Origin: Selaginella moellendorffii
Taxonomy: Eukaryota; Plantae; Lycopodiophyta
Direction of reading: 5' to 3'
Assembly: GCF_000143415.4 (NCBI RefSeq)
Contig: NW_003314390.1
Coordinates: 332,343 to 396,342 of the forward strand
Length of the DNA stretch: 64,000 nucleotides
Below, one piece after another: positions 51,013 through 64,000 of this stretch. The notes below the pieces were generated by a model, which made no database searches, had not been told where the DNA came from, and worked only from the letters and a program-made list of their open reading frames with translations. The translations under genes and the position numbers were made by a program. Position 1 is the stretch's first letter, and each line of letters begins with the position of its first letter.

Positions 51013-54000
51013 GCAGCATGTCTCTTCAAAGCGAGGGCCTTTGAAGAAGTGGATATCGAGGATATCCAACTCTTCGAGCGAGATCACTGAGGTGATCTTG
51101 ATCGAAGGACACAGCGTGCTGTATCCTCGGAGCCATCGTTCGAGGCCTACTCGTGTACCTGTCCAAATGCCCACTCCATCATCTATGTACCTTCGTAGAT
51201 AGAAGGGCCAGTCTTTGGTGGCATGCTTGTACTCGGCTTCGAGAGAGCAGAGGAAGAGGCAAGCGTAGACCACTGTGAGTTGGAGCCCATTGCTGTGCCG
51301 CGGATCTGCTGGTAGATGTTACCGTCAAACTCCACGTAGTTGTGCTCCAGGATGAGGGCAGCCGCAGCCATGAGGAACCACGAGCATGTGGTGCTGCCGT
51401 ACTCGGCAAACACAAAGTCACGGAGGCGTTGGAGACCTCATGTGGGGATGCTTGGGTAGAGGCTCTCTACGTTGAACGTGAAGAGCCAGCAATCCTGTGG
51501 GAGCTGTAGGTGGAGGAGGTCCTGTAGCAGCGTGTGCGAGTCGGAAAGAAATGTTGGCTGCTTCAGCAGGATGTCGTAGAGCTGGCGGTGAAGCCAATGC
51601 GCGAGAGGCTCCCACAAAGTCTTGATGTAGCTCGCAATGGGTTGGCCCTTTATTGGCTGCTTGTGTATTTTTGGAAGAAAATAAATCATGCAAGCCTGCC
51701 GAGGTACGGCGGGCTGGTGCAGCAGGAACTGCTGCATGGAGTTGTCGAGCCACGAGCAGCTGCGGTACTTTGTGATGAGCTCGGCAAGGCATTCCTGGAG
51801 AGATTTGGATGGCACGGTGGGGACCTTCACATAAACGAGTGGGTCGTTCAGTTGGCGGAGAGCCTCCTTCATGTACCAATCGCGATCCAGCACCACCTCT
51901 CCAAGGTTTTTGTCCGCAGGCTTGATGACGATGGATGTGTCTGTTGCGAGAGAGTGGAGAGCACGCTTTTTCCAACCGTGAGCGAAGGAGCGAGGCTTGT
52001 GTGCTCCTTCCAGCCTGTGGAGCAGGCTGCCTCGCACGTGTGCAAGGCGCCGTTCCACATGCGCTGGTGCTGGAGGTGGCTCGAAGCTCGGGTTCGGTAC
52101 TCGAAACTCCGGCAGGGCTGAGTCGTCGTCCTTGAAGAGGTGACGGAGTCAGACGGCTCGGCAGAGAGCATCAGAGCTTTCCACGATCTGTAGGGCTCTA
52201 AGCGGTGCCAGGTTTGGGATGTACCTCAGGCCGAGGGAGAGGAGGCGGATCTCGGCAGCCGAAAGAGCCCTGCTCGAGAGGTTGTGTACGGCTCTAGTCT
52301 CCACTCGATTCTCGAACTTCGAGACTGGCCGTTGTCCCGCAGTGTCGAGGATGGCCTTAGACGGACTGGTCAGTGGTGACCAGTAGTCTTGAGGATTCCC
52401 CTCATGGGGACTTTGGCGGTTGGCAAGCGTGAGCGCGAGTGAGAGCGGCGTCGTGGTGCTGGGGTCCTGCTCCTGCGGCTGCCAGGGGTCTGGCTCTGTC
52501 CAGGGCGAGGTCGAGGGCTGCGTGTGTGAGCTCCCTTGCTGCCTCTGGTCGGTGAATGTCCTCGCGGTCGCTGGGGACCTAAGTTGACCGGTGCCGGTGT
52601 CGTGGAGCGAGGGTGCTGCTGCGGGGAGCTGCTGCGGCTGGAACAGTGAGGGCCATCGCGTCCAGCGTTCTTTTCGTGGGAACCATGCTGGGCTGGAGAT
52701 GTCCGGCGCAGAGTCCCCCTCGAAGAAGAAGCCAATGCAGCAGAATGGGTGGGAGGAGTCCCAGTAGCCCCGTTCCGCCGCTGTCCGTTTCCCTGGTCGT
52801 TGCGGGCGGGTGTTGCCGACCGGGATCCGGCTTCATCAGCGTTGGCGGCAAAGGAGACACGGTGCTTCTTGCCCAAATCCTGCGCATGCTTACCCGGTGT
52901 GCCGTCACGTTGCTCTCGCGCTTTGTTCTTCTTTTCTCGCTTTCTCTTCTTTTTTCCTGCATTCGACGGCGTAGCATGTCACTGGCTTTGGAGGGCCTTC
53001 GTAACAGCGGCGTTCACAAGCTCTGCGATGGTCTGCTCCTTGGGGAGGGCATCCACAGAGGCGTTCGCCACATCGATGGCTTCCTCCAGTTGCCGCGTCG
53101 CCGTCGTCTGCACTCGTGCTCGATTCCCTTGCCGGCCATAAAGAACGATGTCTCAGTGTGGAACTTGAGGGTACACCGTTGCTTTAGAGCGAGCAGGTGG
53201 TGGTAGACAGCATCATGCTCCGTGGCGCTGCAGTAACTGAGTGTGGAGGTGACGAGATCCTCGAGTCAGCTGCAAAAGAGATCCCTGAGACCCGAGGAGA
53301 CAAGTCTCTGGAGTGTCTCGATCTCGTCCTCACGAGCCTTAATGAGAATGTCATGCAGCTCCTTGAGATAGCGCTCGTGCGCCTCAGCAATTCTGCTCGT
53401 GAGGCCGTCCTGGGCATGTCGAGACACCTTGAGCTTTGGTGGGCGTGTGTGGAGCGACTGCAGGCATTTCTTCTGCTCTTTCAGGTCCTTGAGGCCCTGG
53501 AGAGCTGATCTCGATGACACCAGAGTGTTGTACTCTTGCAGAAATTCTCACAGGGAGCTCGCAAGGATGCTGTTGAAGGCTCCATTGATGTTCTTGAAGC
53601 CTCCAAGTGTGTAGCCATCTTCTGCTCCAGTGGCCAGTGGCGGAGGTGGCGCAGCCGGTGGCTCGGGCATATGTCCCGGGGCTGGCTGGCCTGAGCATCG
53701 CTCTGGCTGGGGAGGGATGGCCTCAGCATCTGTGCATGTCCTCTGTGCTGCTGGGTGGTCTCGCGGTGGCAGAGCGACCGGAGGGTCCACTGGAGCAGGG
53801 GGAGGACGTCGCAGCTCCTGCGATGCTGCACGCTGAGATGCATGCGTCTGCGTTGTGCGTGTCGAGGGTGCCCGCTGTGCTGGTGAGGCCCGTGGTGTCA
53901 GGGGTGGCGGTCCAGCCTCGGGAGAGCGAGGTGTGGACGGCCGTTCTGGCATCGAGGTGTGAGGAGGCGTTCGTGGAGTCCGTGGCGAAGGTGTCGGGCG

Positions 54001-54944
54001 CGGAGGCGTAGACACCGGCTGCTCCTGTCGGTGGGACGTGGTGGGCCTGGGCTGGATAGGTCGTGAGACAGAGCCATGCATCGCGGGTGATAGAGGCTGT
54101 CGTAGCAAGCCAGGTCCTGGAAGGCCTCTCTCCGATGGGGGTCGCTGCTCTGCTGCCATGGCAGGGGCAGGCCTGGGTGGCAATGACACAGGATTCGGCA
54201 CCACGGGTGGTGGGAAGATCCGTCACATCGCTGTAGCACTTGACTCTCGCGTTCGTCGTGGATGGCCTCAGCGAGGAGCTGGGAGTGTTCCCGCGACGAG
54301 GTAGCTCGTGACATGGTTCCCAGCTCAAATTGAAGCACTGGAGCTGGAGGAACTGGAGCGTAACCTGTCTCTGCAGTAGCCATGGCGTGGTTGGAGCTCC
54401 CTGGTGCTGCTGGCCTTGGTGGTATGAGCAGTGAGGGGTCCATGACGTCGTGACTGTCCAGTATAGGCACTAGAGCGGCAGATGGTAAAGGTGGCTGTGG
54501 CATCGCTGGCATCACTGGGTGTCACTGGTGGCAGCCGTAGTGCTGGGGACAGCCGCGGTGCTAGAGACGCTGCACAGCGCTGGGCGGCGCGGGGTGGTAC
54601 CGGGTGTTACAGGTGGTACCGCGCGTCTGCCCTGCCCTCTCCTCCTCTCTGGACGCGTACCACGTACCGCCTGAATATTCCGAGAATATTCCCTGCAAAG
54701 TGAACCACGTTTTTCGTCGCCGGGTACGCACAAGTGACACAAGCATTGTGGACGTAACGCATGCATCATATCATGCCGCGTTTACAAGTTATCTTGCGTC
54801 GAAGGTACGTCACCCGCCGGACGAATGCTTACTGTTTTCGGCAATCCGCCGAAGTCATTCTCCGCGACTACCACTGCTGTGGAGTCACCAACCCCAGCTG
54901 TGCTACGTTCGCATCCTCATGAGCCAACGCCGCCATGCACTTCG
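51013..54944 (-). mobile_element. Telomeric EN-minus Penelope-like element copy 1 (oldest, degenerate, 3' end missing)
   Basis: Homologous to 60425-63675 with frameshifts and CpG-type substitutions. RT is cut after GPRFEET. It has an extra 5' region at 54240-54670 and an inverted 3'-UTR segment at 54673-54944. Confidence 0.93.
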
Positions 54945-55109
54945 GTTTACGGTTTAGGGTTTAGGGTTCAAGGGTTTAGGGTTTAGGGTTTAGGGTTTAG
55001 GGTTTTAGGGTTTAGGGTTTAGGGTTTAGGCGCGTTTAGGGTTTAGGGTTTTAGGGTTTAGGGTTTAGGGTTTAGGGTTTAGGGTTTAGGCGCGTTTAGG
55101 CGTTTAGGG
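54945..55109 (+). repeat. Interstitial telomeric tract 1 (TTTAGGG)n with GGCGCG variants
   Basis: Seen directly in the sequence. Confidence 0.98.
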
Positions 55110-63690: not shown

Positions 63691-63759
63691 AGGGCCAGGG
63701 TTGGCAGGGAGGACCCCATGCGGGTAGGCTCCACGGTCCCGTAGGAGGGACTCAAACGG

Positions 63760-64000
63760 TTTAGGGTTTAGGGTTTAGGGTTTAGGGTTTTAGGGTTTAG
63801 GGTTTAGGGTTTAGGGTTTAGGGTTTAGGGTTTAGGGTTTAGGGTTTAGGGTTTAGGGTTTAGGGTTTAGGGTTTAGGGTTTAGGGTTTAGGGTTTAGGG
63901 TTTAGGGTTTAGGGTTTAGGGTTTAGGGTTTAGGGTTTAGGGTTTAGGGTTTAGGGTTTAGGGTTTAGGGTTTAGGGTTTAGGGTTTTAGGGTTTAGGGT
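63760..64000 (+). repeat. Terminal telomeric array (TTTAGGG)n
   Basis: Near-perfect plant-type repeats run to the window end, with the G-strand oriented outward. Confidence 0.97.

Follow-up and report, generated by a model that had tools for sequence, protein, structure and literature searches.

A probable tail-primed array of a Coprina-type, endonuclease-deficient Penelope-like retroelement at a scaffold end of Selaginella moellendorffii

Overview

The window analysed here, a stretch of 64,000 nucleotides, is the last 64 kb of the Selaginella moellendorffii scaffold GL377694.1. Its distal part (51005–64000) is composed of four co-oriented minus-strand copies (A–D, from proximal to distal) of one retroelement, with three TTTAGGG tracts between them and a fourth at the end. 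The array is very probably that of a subtelomeric, Coprina-type endonuclease-deficient Penelope-like retroelement (PLE), built by repeated tail-primed addition and re-capping by telomerase. The array is already known, and publications cover the phenomenon, its occurrence in this species, the ribozyme and the model, so the value of the locus lies in its annotation. Experiments could be guided by its exact junctions, its defined templated tail and the age series of its copies. The system is a textbook case of a nuclease-less retroelement that uses the chromosome end as a primer alongside telomerase, and bears on ideas about the origin of telomerase.

Organization of the array

The window contains 81 TTTAGGG dimers where 0 would be expected by chance, and all 81 are on the plus strand within 54944–64000. 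A scan for these dimers, together with inspection of the junctions, delimits the plus-strand tracts T1 (54944–55110), T2 (57058–57225) and T3 (58632–58897), while the terminal tract T4 (63758–64000) presents the G-strand 5' to 3' up to the end of the scaffold. The tracts are 167–266 bp long and differ from one another in composition. The RNA-sense strand of the element is the C-strand and the 3' ends of the copies are proximal. Tract and element together form units of 2115, 1672 and 5126 bp.

Copy D (58898–63757, minus strand) lies farthest out and is the most complete of the four; its ORFs are intact and its 5' truncation falls within the leader. Copy C (57226–58632, minus strand) consists of the 3'-terminal 1407 nt of the element, corresponding to D nt 1–1407 with 99.0% identity, and its 5' end joins T3. 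Copy B (55111–57055, minus strand) retains the 3'-terminal 1945 nt (D nt 1–1945, 97.8% identity) and joins T2. These three copies have a common 3' module but are truncated at separate 5' points, B at D nt 1945, C at 1407 and D at 4860, and each 5' end passes straight into telomere repeats. The telomere repeat is preceded by GG at three junctions (B, where the GG belongs to the element itself, A and D) and by T at the junction of C.

Copy A (51005–54240, minus strand) is the proximal and oldest copy and corresponds to D nt 1527–4778 with 94.9% identity. It differs from D by 140 transitions and 25 transversions, and contains frameshifts from 1-nt indels and at least five stops per ORF; what remains of the RT ORF in B and in C is open. 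The claim of a reading made earlier from the sequence only, that decay is greatest in the proximal copy, is therefore borne out by these counts. Further 5' leader of copy A follows at 54241–54672 (minus strand) with a deletion of approximately 650 bp relative to the leader type of D and of an old copy elsewhere in the genome (L003). The distal end of A is then occupied by an inverted 272-bp fragment on the plus strand (54673–54944), which matches D 59198–59469 at 96% and is followed by T1. This fragment is derived from the element's own 3' UTR and has its sense on the G-strand.

The 3' 1.5 kb of copy A, comprising the 3' UTR, ribozyme and tail, is missing, and A abuts a Ty3/gypsy retrotransposon at 51004/51005. 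The latter (46260–51004, minus strand) is composed of a gag-protease-RT-RNase H-integrase ORF (46260–50186) and approximately 820 bp upstream of it, and is interrupted by an assembly gap at 46267–46366. The missing part of A and a second LTR were sought beyond the gypsy element and neither was found, though the gap may hide both. Because the 3' junction of A is lost, its attachment to the telomere is not visible. The sequence-only reading had described four co-oriented copies associated with TTTAGGG, each capped by this repeat at its 5' end. The four minus-strand copies, three tracts and terminal tract are as described, except that A has no 3' end; direct capping applies to B, C and D, but the distal end of A carries the deleted leader and the inverted 272-bp piece before T1.

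Element layout, ORF1 and the templated tail

In RNA sense the element consists of a leader of at least 1 kb, ORF1, an RT ORF (ORF2) in the -1 frame, a 3' UTR of approximately 1 kb, a hammerhead ribozyme, approximately 165 nt of hairpins and a tail. ORF1 of copy D is located at 61792–63690 (minus strand) with a probable ATG at 63663. No Pfam family was matched by its product, and homologues were found only within S. moellendorffii, among them the ORF1 of a second family at another locus (L001; 35% identity). The N-terminus of the product is Pro-rich, its centre (aa ~223–454) is modelled as helical at low confidence and its basic tail is rich in Arg and Ser. Because the confidence of this single-sequence fold prediction is low (pLDDT 44.6), only central helices and disordered ends can be read from it. 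The NCBI gene models SELMODRAFT_430402 and SELMODRAFT_430401 correspond to ORF1 copies of the element and are not host genes.

The tail is made of C-strand telomere repeats over at least approximately 85 nt, and its variant units occur at fixed places. The tail of D (58812–58896, minus strand) contains two CGCGCC-type variants and one CGCC-type variant, that of B (55025–55109, minus strand) has two CGCGCC units about seven repeats apart as in D, and that of C (57200–57224, minus strand) keeps one CGCGCC unit. In both T1 and T3 the units follow the order of plain repeat, CGCC variant, CGCGCC variant, approximately seven repeats and second CGCGCC variant. The identical order is present in L001 on scaffold GL377752.1, a locus that also contains an ultra-short copy of 31 nt. 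Since the variant units are fixed in order, on another scaffold as well, the tail was copied from the element RNA and not made by telomerase.

Reverse transcriptase

ORF2 of copy D (59948–61726, minus strand) encodes a PLE-type RT without an endonuclease, with a weak match to RVT_1. Residues 2–587 align with the RT part of the GIY-YIG-bearing PLEs P0113 and P0098 (30–31% identity, E-values of 3e-61 and 8e-65), and this homology extends from the N-terminal DKN-type motif through the RT core with motifs 1–7 to the thumb. ORF2 stops approximately 50 aa ahead of the position at which GIY-YIG is found in these endonuclease-bearing relatives. Across 27 relatives, little or no variation is seen at D131, K132, N133 and the catalytic DD (376–377). 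Homologues of ORF2 carry DUF8422, RVT_1 and HTH_animal domains, and most of the nearest ESM Atlas clusters come from rotifers; an exact-protein look-up of the RT returned nothing on record.

A Pfam search for GIY-YIG or any other endonuclease domain gave no match in ORF1, ORF2 or the 3' UTR ORFs of the copies, all of which are 5'-truncated, and an upstream ORF in the L003 leader likewise had no Pfam match. The endonuclease tails of GIY-YIG-bearing PLEs were also compared with the whole array by tblastn as a search for a nuclease relic, and the best E-value was 0.25. The absence of GIY-YIG noted in the sequence-only reading is thus upheld by Pfam, by the alignment and by tblastn, and judged from its sequence the protein is a PLE RT lacking the endonuclease.

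A structure model of the RT was obtained with a pLDDT of 91, and 7 of the top 10 Foldseek hits were TERT structures. The TM-scores against TERT were 0.38–0.45; R2 was placed at rank 3 with an E-value near that of TERT, and the margin of TERT over the R2 and LINE-1 RTs was small. The RT sequence alone had no match in the PDB, and a profile of 27 RT sequences gave weak generic RT matches there, with TERT at a non-significant E-value of 1.4. Under the mechanism proposed below, the element RT would resemble telomerase in extending the 3' end of the G-strand with an RNA that bears C-strand repeats as template. The template would differ, being the element's own mRNA copied far past the repeats, and the TEN and TRBD domains of telomerase are absent from the element RT, which is only ~590 aa long.

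Hammerhead ribozyme

A type I hammerhead ribozyme was identified in all three 3' modules of the array, at 59048–59115 in copy D, 57376–57443 in C and 55261–55328 in B (all minus strand), and it is present in L001 as well. All three modules match the Rfam family HH9 at 42 bits (E 5e-8), below the gathering score of 52, and the core motifs are intact. Hammerhead ribozymes in the PLEs of S. moellendorffii were published in 2014 (PMC4209133). The cleavage site in D is predicted to lie between 59067 and 59066, approximately 170 nt upstream of the tail. The ribozyme was considered as the maker of the 3' end of the tail and rejected, since from this upstream location it could not create that end by itself. 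Helix III is a short palindrome, a feature suggesting cleavage only in dimeric form, as might occur in read-through transcripts of arrays.

Origin of the array

The array most plausibly arose through successive additions to the chromosome end, and the priming on the overhang, the part of telomerase and that of the ribozyme are inferred here from the array sequence. The tail of the element RNA would anneal to an exposed TTTAGGG 3' overhang, and the element RT would copy the RNA onto the G-strand, which would place the element 3' end proximally. The new end, shortened by incomplete copying or later erosion, would then receive TTTAGGG repeats from telomerase, preferentially where it already finishes in GG. 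Repetition of this cycle would have added A, then B, then C, then D. Incomplete cDNA or later end erosion could each account for the 5' truncations, and either telomerase or longer RNA tails could be the source of the perfect inter-copy repeats. An inverted 272-bp fragment such as the one at the distal end of A would not be expected from this simple model.

Tail priming followed by telomerase re-capping had also been put forward from the sequence only, and it is supported by the polarity, the templated tail, the distinct truncations, the age gradient and the endonuclease-less RT. This mechanism is the published model and not a new inference: annealing of the RNA tail to the G-overhang, copying by the element RT and addition of repeats by telomerase are set out in the discussion of PMC13159263 and the introduction of PMC8557442. 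Both papers cite Gladyshev & Arkhipova (2007), in which this mode of attachment was reportedly published for S. moellendorffii.

The chain of B, C and D, or the whole array, could have been produced in a single event if the RT, on stalling or on reaching the end of one RNA, jumped to the C-strand tail of another; the tracts between copies would then derive from long RNA tails, and telomerase would have no part there. The distal 25–85 nt of each tract are demonstrably templated, all tracts share irregular units, for example the TTTTAGGG variant, and the GG or T microhomology at the junctions suits a template jump as well as it suits telomerase. The divergence from D, however, is graded (99.0% identity in C, 97.8% in B and 94.9% in A) and dominated by transitions, and broken ORFs occur only in the innermost copy, a pattern that fits insertions separated in time. 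T4 also consists of at least 243 bp of repeats on a truncated 5' end with no further element. A one-event origin is therefore regarded as improbable.

The copies could instead have been multiplied at the DNA level, by duplication or unequal recombination of a tract with the 3' part of the element. Subtelomeres often recombine, and the 3' modules are 97–99% identical, but no two copies have a common 5' truncation point or tract structure and the unit lengths are unequal, so this origin is disfavoured and appears highly unlikely. An assembly artefact affecting the order or the number of copies, with near-identical subtelomeric repeats from several ends or two haplotypes collapsed or misjoined, is also quite unlikely. 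The window comes from the scaffold-level, 2011-era assembly GCA_000143415.2 with five N gaps proximal to the array, and contigs from public runs that overlap the last 318 nt of D continue into longer copies and not into T4. Against such an artefact, there is no gap within 50000–64000, private substitutions and a distinct junction mark each copy, and similar chains are present on other scaffolds.

Comparison with known elements

Telomeric endonuclease-less PLEs have been reported in S. moellendorffii (PMC12477314, PMC4209133, PMC8557442, PMC13159263), and the RepBase elements Sm1 and Sm2 of this species are placed in Coprina (PMC13159263). The window element is likened to these by features and literature, and may correspond to Sm1, to Sm2 or to neither. 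It shares with them the species, the telomeric position, an RT without GIY-YIG, a 3' end followed by reverse-complement telomere repeats, telomere-capped 5'-truncated copies and a hammerhead in the 3' repeat region. Two ORFs are present in the window element, as in Coprina-1_Alen (PMC13159263), whereas descriptions of Coprina usually give a single ORF.

The Athena elements and Terminons of bdelloid rotifers also have an endonuclease-less PLE RT and two ORFs with a helical ORF1 product, and they too form chains of 5'-truncated units attached to the G-overhang through C-rich 3' repeats near a hammerhead. They were reportedly described by Gladyshev and Arkhipova in 2007 and by Arkhipova and co-workers in 2017. 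Their length reaches 40 kb, whereas the units in the window are ~6 kb with no captured host genes seen. The ribozyme, directly beside the tail in these rotifer elements, is located ~165 nt upstream of it in the window element, whose telomere repeat is, unlike theirs, of the plant type. Canonical endonuclease-bearing PLEs (Penelope/Poseidon, Neptune) share RT homology over the full length and a hammerhead in a terminal repeat. They have a C-terminal GIY-YIG domain and occupy internal sites with target duplications, while the window element lacks this domain and would insert at chromosome ends. Head-to-tail arrays with 5' truncations are likewise formed at chromosome ends by HeT-A/TART/TAHRE of Drosophila and SART/TRAS of Bombyx, which are non-LTR (LINE) elements and not PLEs. 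Drosophila is without telomerase repeats, and SART/TRAS cut telomere repeats by means of an endonuclease (PMC5537684).

Distribution of the family

Three other loci of the family were examined for position. L001 is a chain with C-strand tracts within a 103-kb scaffold, at least 16 kb from the scaffold end, and its copies have a 3' end followed by reverse-complement telomere repeats as in B, C and D. L003 is an old copy (82–87% identical) on an 814-kb scaffold, approximately 400 kb in from the end, and no tract adjoins it. Since these two loci lie inside scaffolds, the family is not strictly terminal in GCA_000143415.2.

In an RT tree made without Athena, Coprina or TERT reference sequences, the window RT is sister to the second S. 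moellendorffii family, inside a well-supported clade with Ginkgo, Cryptomeria and Closterium. Within this clade Closterium branches first, Selaginella next and Ginkgo with Cryptomeria last, in agreement with the host phylogeny. The conifer and alga relatives are arranged in head-to-tail arrays that are punctuated by ribozymes and have no telomere tracts. That the endonuclease-less, telomere-attaching PLE RT is an old, vertically inherited resident of streptophytes and not a spikemoss oddity is a tentative idea that we consider doubtful. If true, at least one change in the mode of propagation would have occurred in this lineage, with telomere-primed addition giving way to tandem or possibly circular-RNA-based amplification.

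Contigs from public runs, the RNA status of which is only guessed, extend 137–922 nt past the end of D at 63757, and the L003 leader continues further than D and these contigs. Copy D is therefore also 5'-truncated and none of the four copies is full length. The public runs provide another truncation capped by telomere repeats, at position 62725. In these runs the final 160 nt of the element have a higher contig depth. An abundant small RNA was considered for this rise and rejected as unnecessary, since the 5'-truncated copies all retain the 3' end and thereby raise its copy number.

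Architecture of the terminal array

The last 12,177 bases of the window are the exact reverse complement of GL377694.1:384166-396342 (assembly GCA_000143415.2), and the window therefore forms the terminal 64 kb of a scaffold of 396 kb. No N gaps occur within 50000-64000, and five are located farther in, including 46267-46366. All 81 TTTAGGG dimers found in the window are on the plus strand within 54944-64000 (chance expectation 0). The dimer search defines four plus-strand tracts, T1 (54944-55110), T2 (57058-57225), T3 (58632-58897) and T4 (63758-64000), the last of which reaches the scaffold end.

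Four copies of a single GC-rich element (GC approximately 55-62%, compared with approximately 33-50% elsewhere in the window) lie between and before these tracts, lettered A to D from proximal to distal. All four are on the minus strand, which bears out the co-orientation proposed in the sequence-only reading. Copy D (58898-63757) serves as the reference. Copy C (57226-58632) corresponds to nt 1-1407 of D with 99.0% identity, copy B (55111-57055) to nt 1-1945 with 97.84% identity, and copy A (51005-54240) to nt 1527-4778 with 94.90% identity. Transitions and transversions relative to D number 13:1 for C, 36:6 for B and 140:25 for A. Copy A also carries two 1-nt deletions, one 1-nt insertion and, whichever frame of either ORF is read, at least five stops, and B and C retain open frames in their reverse transcriptase (RT) remnants; decay is thus strongest in the proximal copy, as had been claimed.

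Truncated ends and proximal flank

The sequence-only reading had placed the 3' ends proximally and capped each 5' end with telomere repeats. The shared polarity holds for all four copies, but copy A is missing its 3' 1.5 kb, comprising the 3' UTR, ribozyme and tail, and adjoins a Ty3/gypsy element with a full polyprotein ORF (46260-50186, minus strand). The proximal flank (42968-51004) consists of nested Ty3/gypsy sequence that also includes a gag ORF (42968-44890, plus strand). Assembly gaps of 100 N each interrupt this flank at 42816-42915 and 46267-46366, and no LTR pair was found for the gapped sequence in 42968-51004.

Telomere repeats directly follow the 5' ends of B, C and D. At copy A, a distal part of the leader (54241-54672, minus strand) represents sequence farther upstream, with approximately 650 bp missing relative to L003, an internal S. 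moellendorffii copy. It is followed by an inverted 272-bp piece of the element 3' UTR (54673-54944, plus strand; 96% identity to 59198-59469), and T1 starts only beyond this piece. The inverted piece is not predicted by a simple priming model, and may have arisen from a template switch onto a cDNA or antisense strand, or from end joining.

The 5' end of copy D is likewise truncated. In three public runs, contigs overlapping its last 318 nt extend 137, 691 and 922 nt further, and L003 contains the last 82 nt of D followed by additional leader. The full element therefore measures at least approximately 5.9 kb, and all four copies are incomplete. The bases preceding the repeat at the 5' junctions are GCGG in B, ACGG in D, TCGG in the inverted piece of A and GCT in C; the GG at the B junction is the element's own sequence, as seen in D. 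These junctions are read as short homology to the repeat, as either telomerase healing or the annealing of a subsequent RNA tail would predict. Another copy, cut at position 62725 and telomere-capped, was observed in one public run. On scaffold GL377752.1 (locus L001, approximately 6632-6662), an ultra-short copy composed of the element's last 31 nt or so plus the tail is located inside a telomere-repeat tract, indicating that truncation can spare little beyond the tail.

The 3' module and templated tail

In the RNA sense, ORF2 is followed by a 3' UTR of approximately 1 kb, a hammerhead ribozyme, approximately 165 nt of predicted hairpins and the tail. The type-I hammerhead of copy D (59048-59115, minus strand) was matched by HH9 with 42 bits (E 5e-8), under the gathering score, and its sequence is identical in copies B, C and D. 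Helix II has 4 bp and helix III is a palindrome of six bases, an architecture termed "canonical" for the hammerheads of S. moellendorffii Penelope-like elements (PLEs) and expected to be active in dimeric form (Cervera & de la Pena, PMC4209133). The predicted cut site, between 59067 and 59066, is upstream of the tail, so the ribozyme cannot expose the 3' end of the tail.

The tails (minus strand) occupy 58812-58896 in D, 57200-57224 in C and 55025-55109 in B and carry fixed variant units. Going outwards from the element along the G-strand, the order is a plain repeat, a TTTAGGCG unit, a TTTAGGCGCG unit and approximately seven repeats, one with an extra T, with a second TTTAGGCGCG unit after these in B and D. 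The identical order is present at different chromosome ends, recurring on scaffold GL377752.1 (L001 6460-6720 and 13910-13990). To our knowledge, telomerase does not write fixed variant units of this kind, and their recurrence argues that a minimum of 85 nt per tract was copied from element RNA. On the sequence evidence, the tail is templated by the element.

Several further features were observed around this module. In the predicted RNA fold, a CGCGCC unit of the tail pairs with a GGCGC stretch just 5' of the ribozyme, and a G-strand-like motif lies immediately before the ribozyme (59121-59135). A high-depth contig of public run X14 stops at 59114 and continues with three odd letters and then Illumina adapter, which suggests an abundance of short molecules whose ends coincide with the 5' edge of the ribozyme. 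In three of four public runs, contigs are 4-5 times as deep over the element's last 160 nt (58898-59059) as over the body, most simply because every truncated copy retains the 3' end.

Coding capacity

ORF1 of copy D (61792-63690, minus strand) probably starts at the ATG at 63663. Its product has a Pro-rich start and predicted helices at approximately aa 223-454, and its Arg/Ser-rich tail carries a net charge of +44. No Pfam family was found for ORF1, and its homologues, including the ORF1 of a second family (35% identity), were found only in S. moellendorffii. Two NCBI gene models, SELMODRAFT_430402 (P0121, 61792-63663) and SELMODRAFT_430401 (P0123, 51900-54200), annotate element ORF1 as host genes; P0123 is the decayed copy A, to which the model has given invented introns.

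ORF2 (59948-61726, minus strand) encodes the RT in the -1 frame relative to ORF1 and is open across 427 nt of ORF1 (61726-62218 region, minus strand). The first ATG of this open frame does not occur before codon 369, and the peptide 5' of the annotated Met of the NCBI protein P0001 is conserved between both Selaginella families. The RT is therefore probably translated through frameshifting, through reinitiation or from a non-AUG start.

The local Pfam search of the RT returned RVT_1 alone, as a weak match, and ORFs in the 3' UTR gave no Pfam matches. A large protein search recovered 423 RT relatives, nearly all of approximately 560-650 aa with DUF8422 and HTH_animal and without GIY-YIG. Two longer relatives, P0113 from Ixodes persulcatus and P0098, have a GIY-YIG endonuclease (EN) at the C-terminus, above the Pfam cut-off. 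Residues 2-587 of the window RT align to 137-717 of P0113, whose GIY-YIG is at 768-850, and the window RT stops five residues past the end of this alignment. Tblastn of the EN tails found no relic in 51000-64000 (best E 0.25), in agreement with the proposal that the RT is EN-less.

An AlphaFold model of the RT built on 27 relatives was confident (pLDDT 91.3, pTM 0.88). Telomerase catalytic subunits were its PDB neighbours at ranks 1, 2, 4-6 and 8-11 (TM-scores 0.38-0.45), with R2 and LINE-1 RTs interspersed among them, and the RT sequence profile did not significantly retrieve TERT from the PDB. The structural neighbours are compatible with a link between PLE RTs and TERT, which rests mainly on published trees (PMC8557442).

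Origin of the array

EN-deficient PLEs associated with telomeres are described from S. moellendorffii (PMC12477314, PMC4209133, PMC13159263, PMC8557442), PMC4209133 also shows their hammerheads, and PMC13159263 names Coprina Sm1 and Sm2 as RepBase families. A telomeric EN-less PLE array in this species is thus already known, and the exact junctions, fixed tail variants, frame arrangement and inverted fragment are incremental details. In the model of PMC13159263, PLE RNA homologous to temporarily unprotected telomeres is copied by the PLE RT and telomerase then adds repeats; in the description of PMC8557442, reverse-complement repeats, together with neighbouring hammerhead motifs, help the element attach to G-rich overhangs. 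The array shows the polarity, a tail that is templated, truncation points that differ between copies, microhomology and a series of ages, and at the sequence level it fits the published model. Element RNA would pair with an unprotected telomere and be copied by the PLE RT before telomerase adds repeats, with additions in the order A, B, C, D according to the age series; the truncated 5' ends would reflect cDNA left incomplete or erosion at a later stage.

Template jumps during a single event could also place several copies in a row, but this is unlikely given that divergence is graded and transition-rich. Misassembly is quite improbable as the source of the array, which is gap-free, has private changes in each copy and is matched by similar chains at other places. 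Duplication at the DNA level is the least credible origin and highly improbable, as junctions and tract structures differ from copy to copy.

Genomic distribution and streptophyte relatives

In assembly GCA_000143415.2 the family is not confined to scaffold ends. A scaffold of 103 kb holds the L001 chain and its C-strand tracts internally, and the old copy L003 (82-87% identity) sits approximately 400 kb into a scaffold of 814 kb.

In a quick maximum-likelihood RT tree rooted with EN-bearing relatives, both Selaginella RTs group together (support 100), with a sister clade holding Ginkgo and Cryptomeria (99) and Closterium next (98). The clade order tracks host phylogeny, which suggests that EN-less PLEs have long been inherited vertically in streptophytes. 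In Cryptomeria japonica (BSEH01000784.1), EN-less PLE RT genes with 45% identity to the window RT are arranged head-to-tail with a period of 4.33 kb, with one hammerhead core per unit (4125-4148 and 8464-8487). Relatives of approximately 1030-1040 aa in Closterium sp. NIES-65 (CANXME010000970.1) are also head-to-tail, with a period of approximately 6.02 kb. In the Cryptomeria and Closterium arrays, adjacent units have a hammerhead core between them, and telomere tracts are absent. Each Cryptomeria unit also contains a 5S-rRNA-like segment just past the RT stop (8106-8204), with a score of 38 bits, equal to the gathering score.
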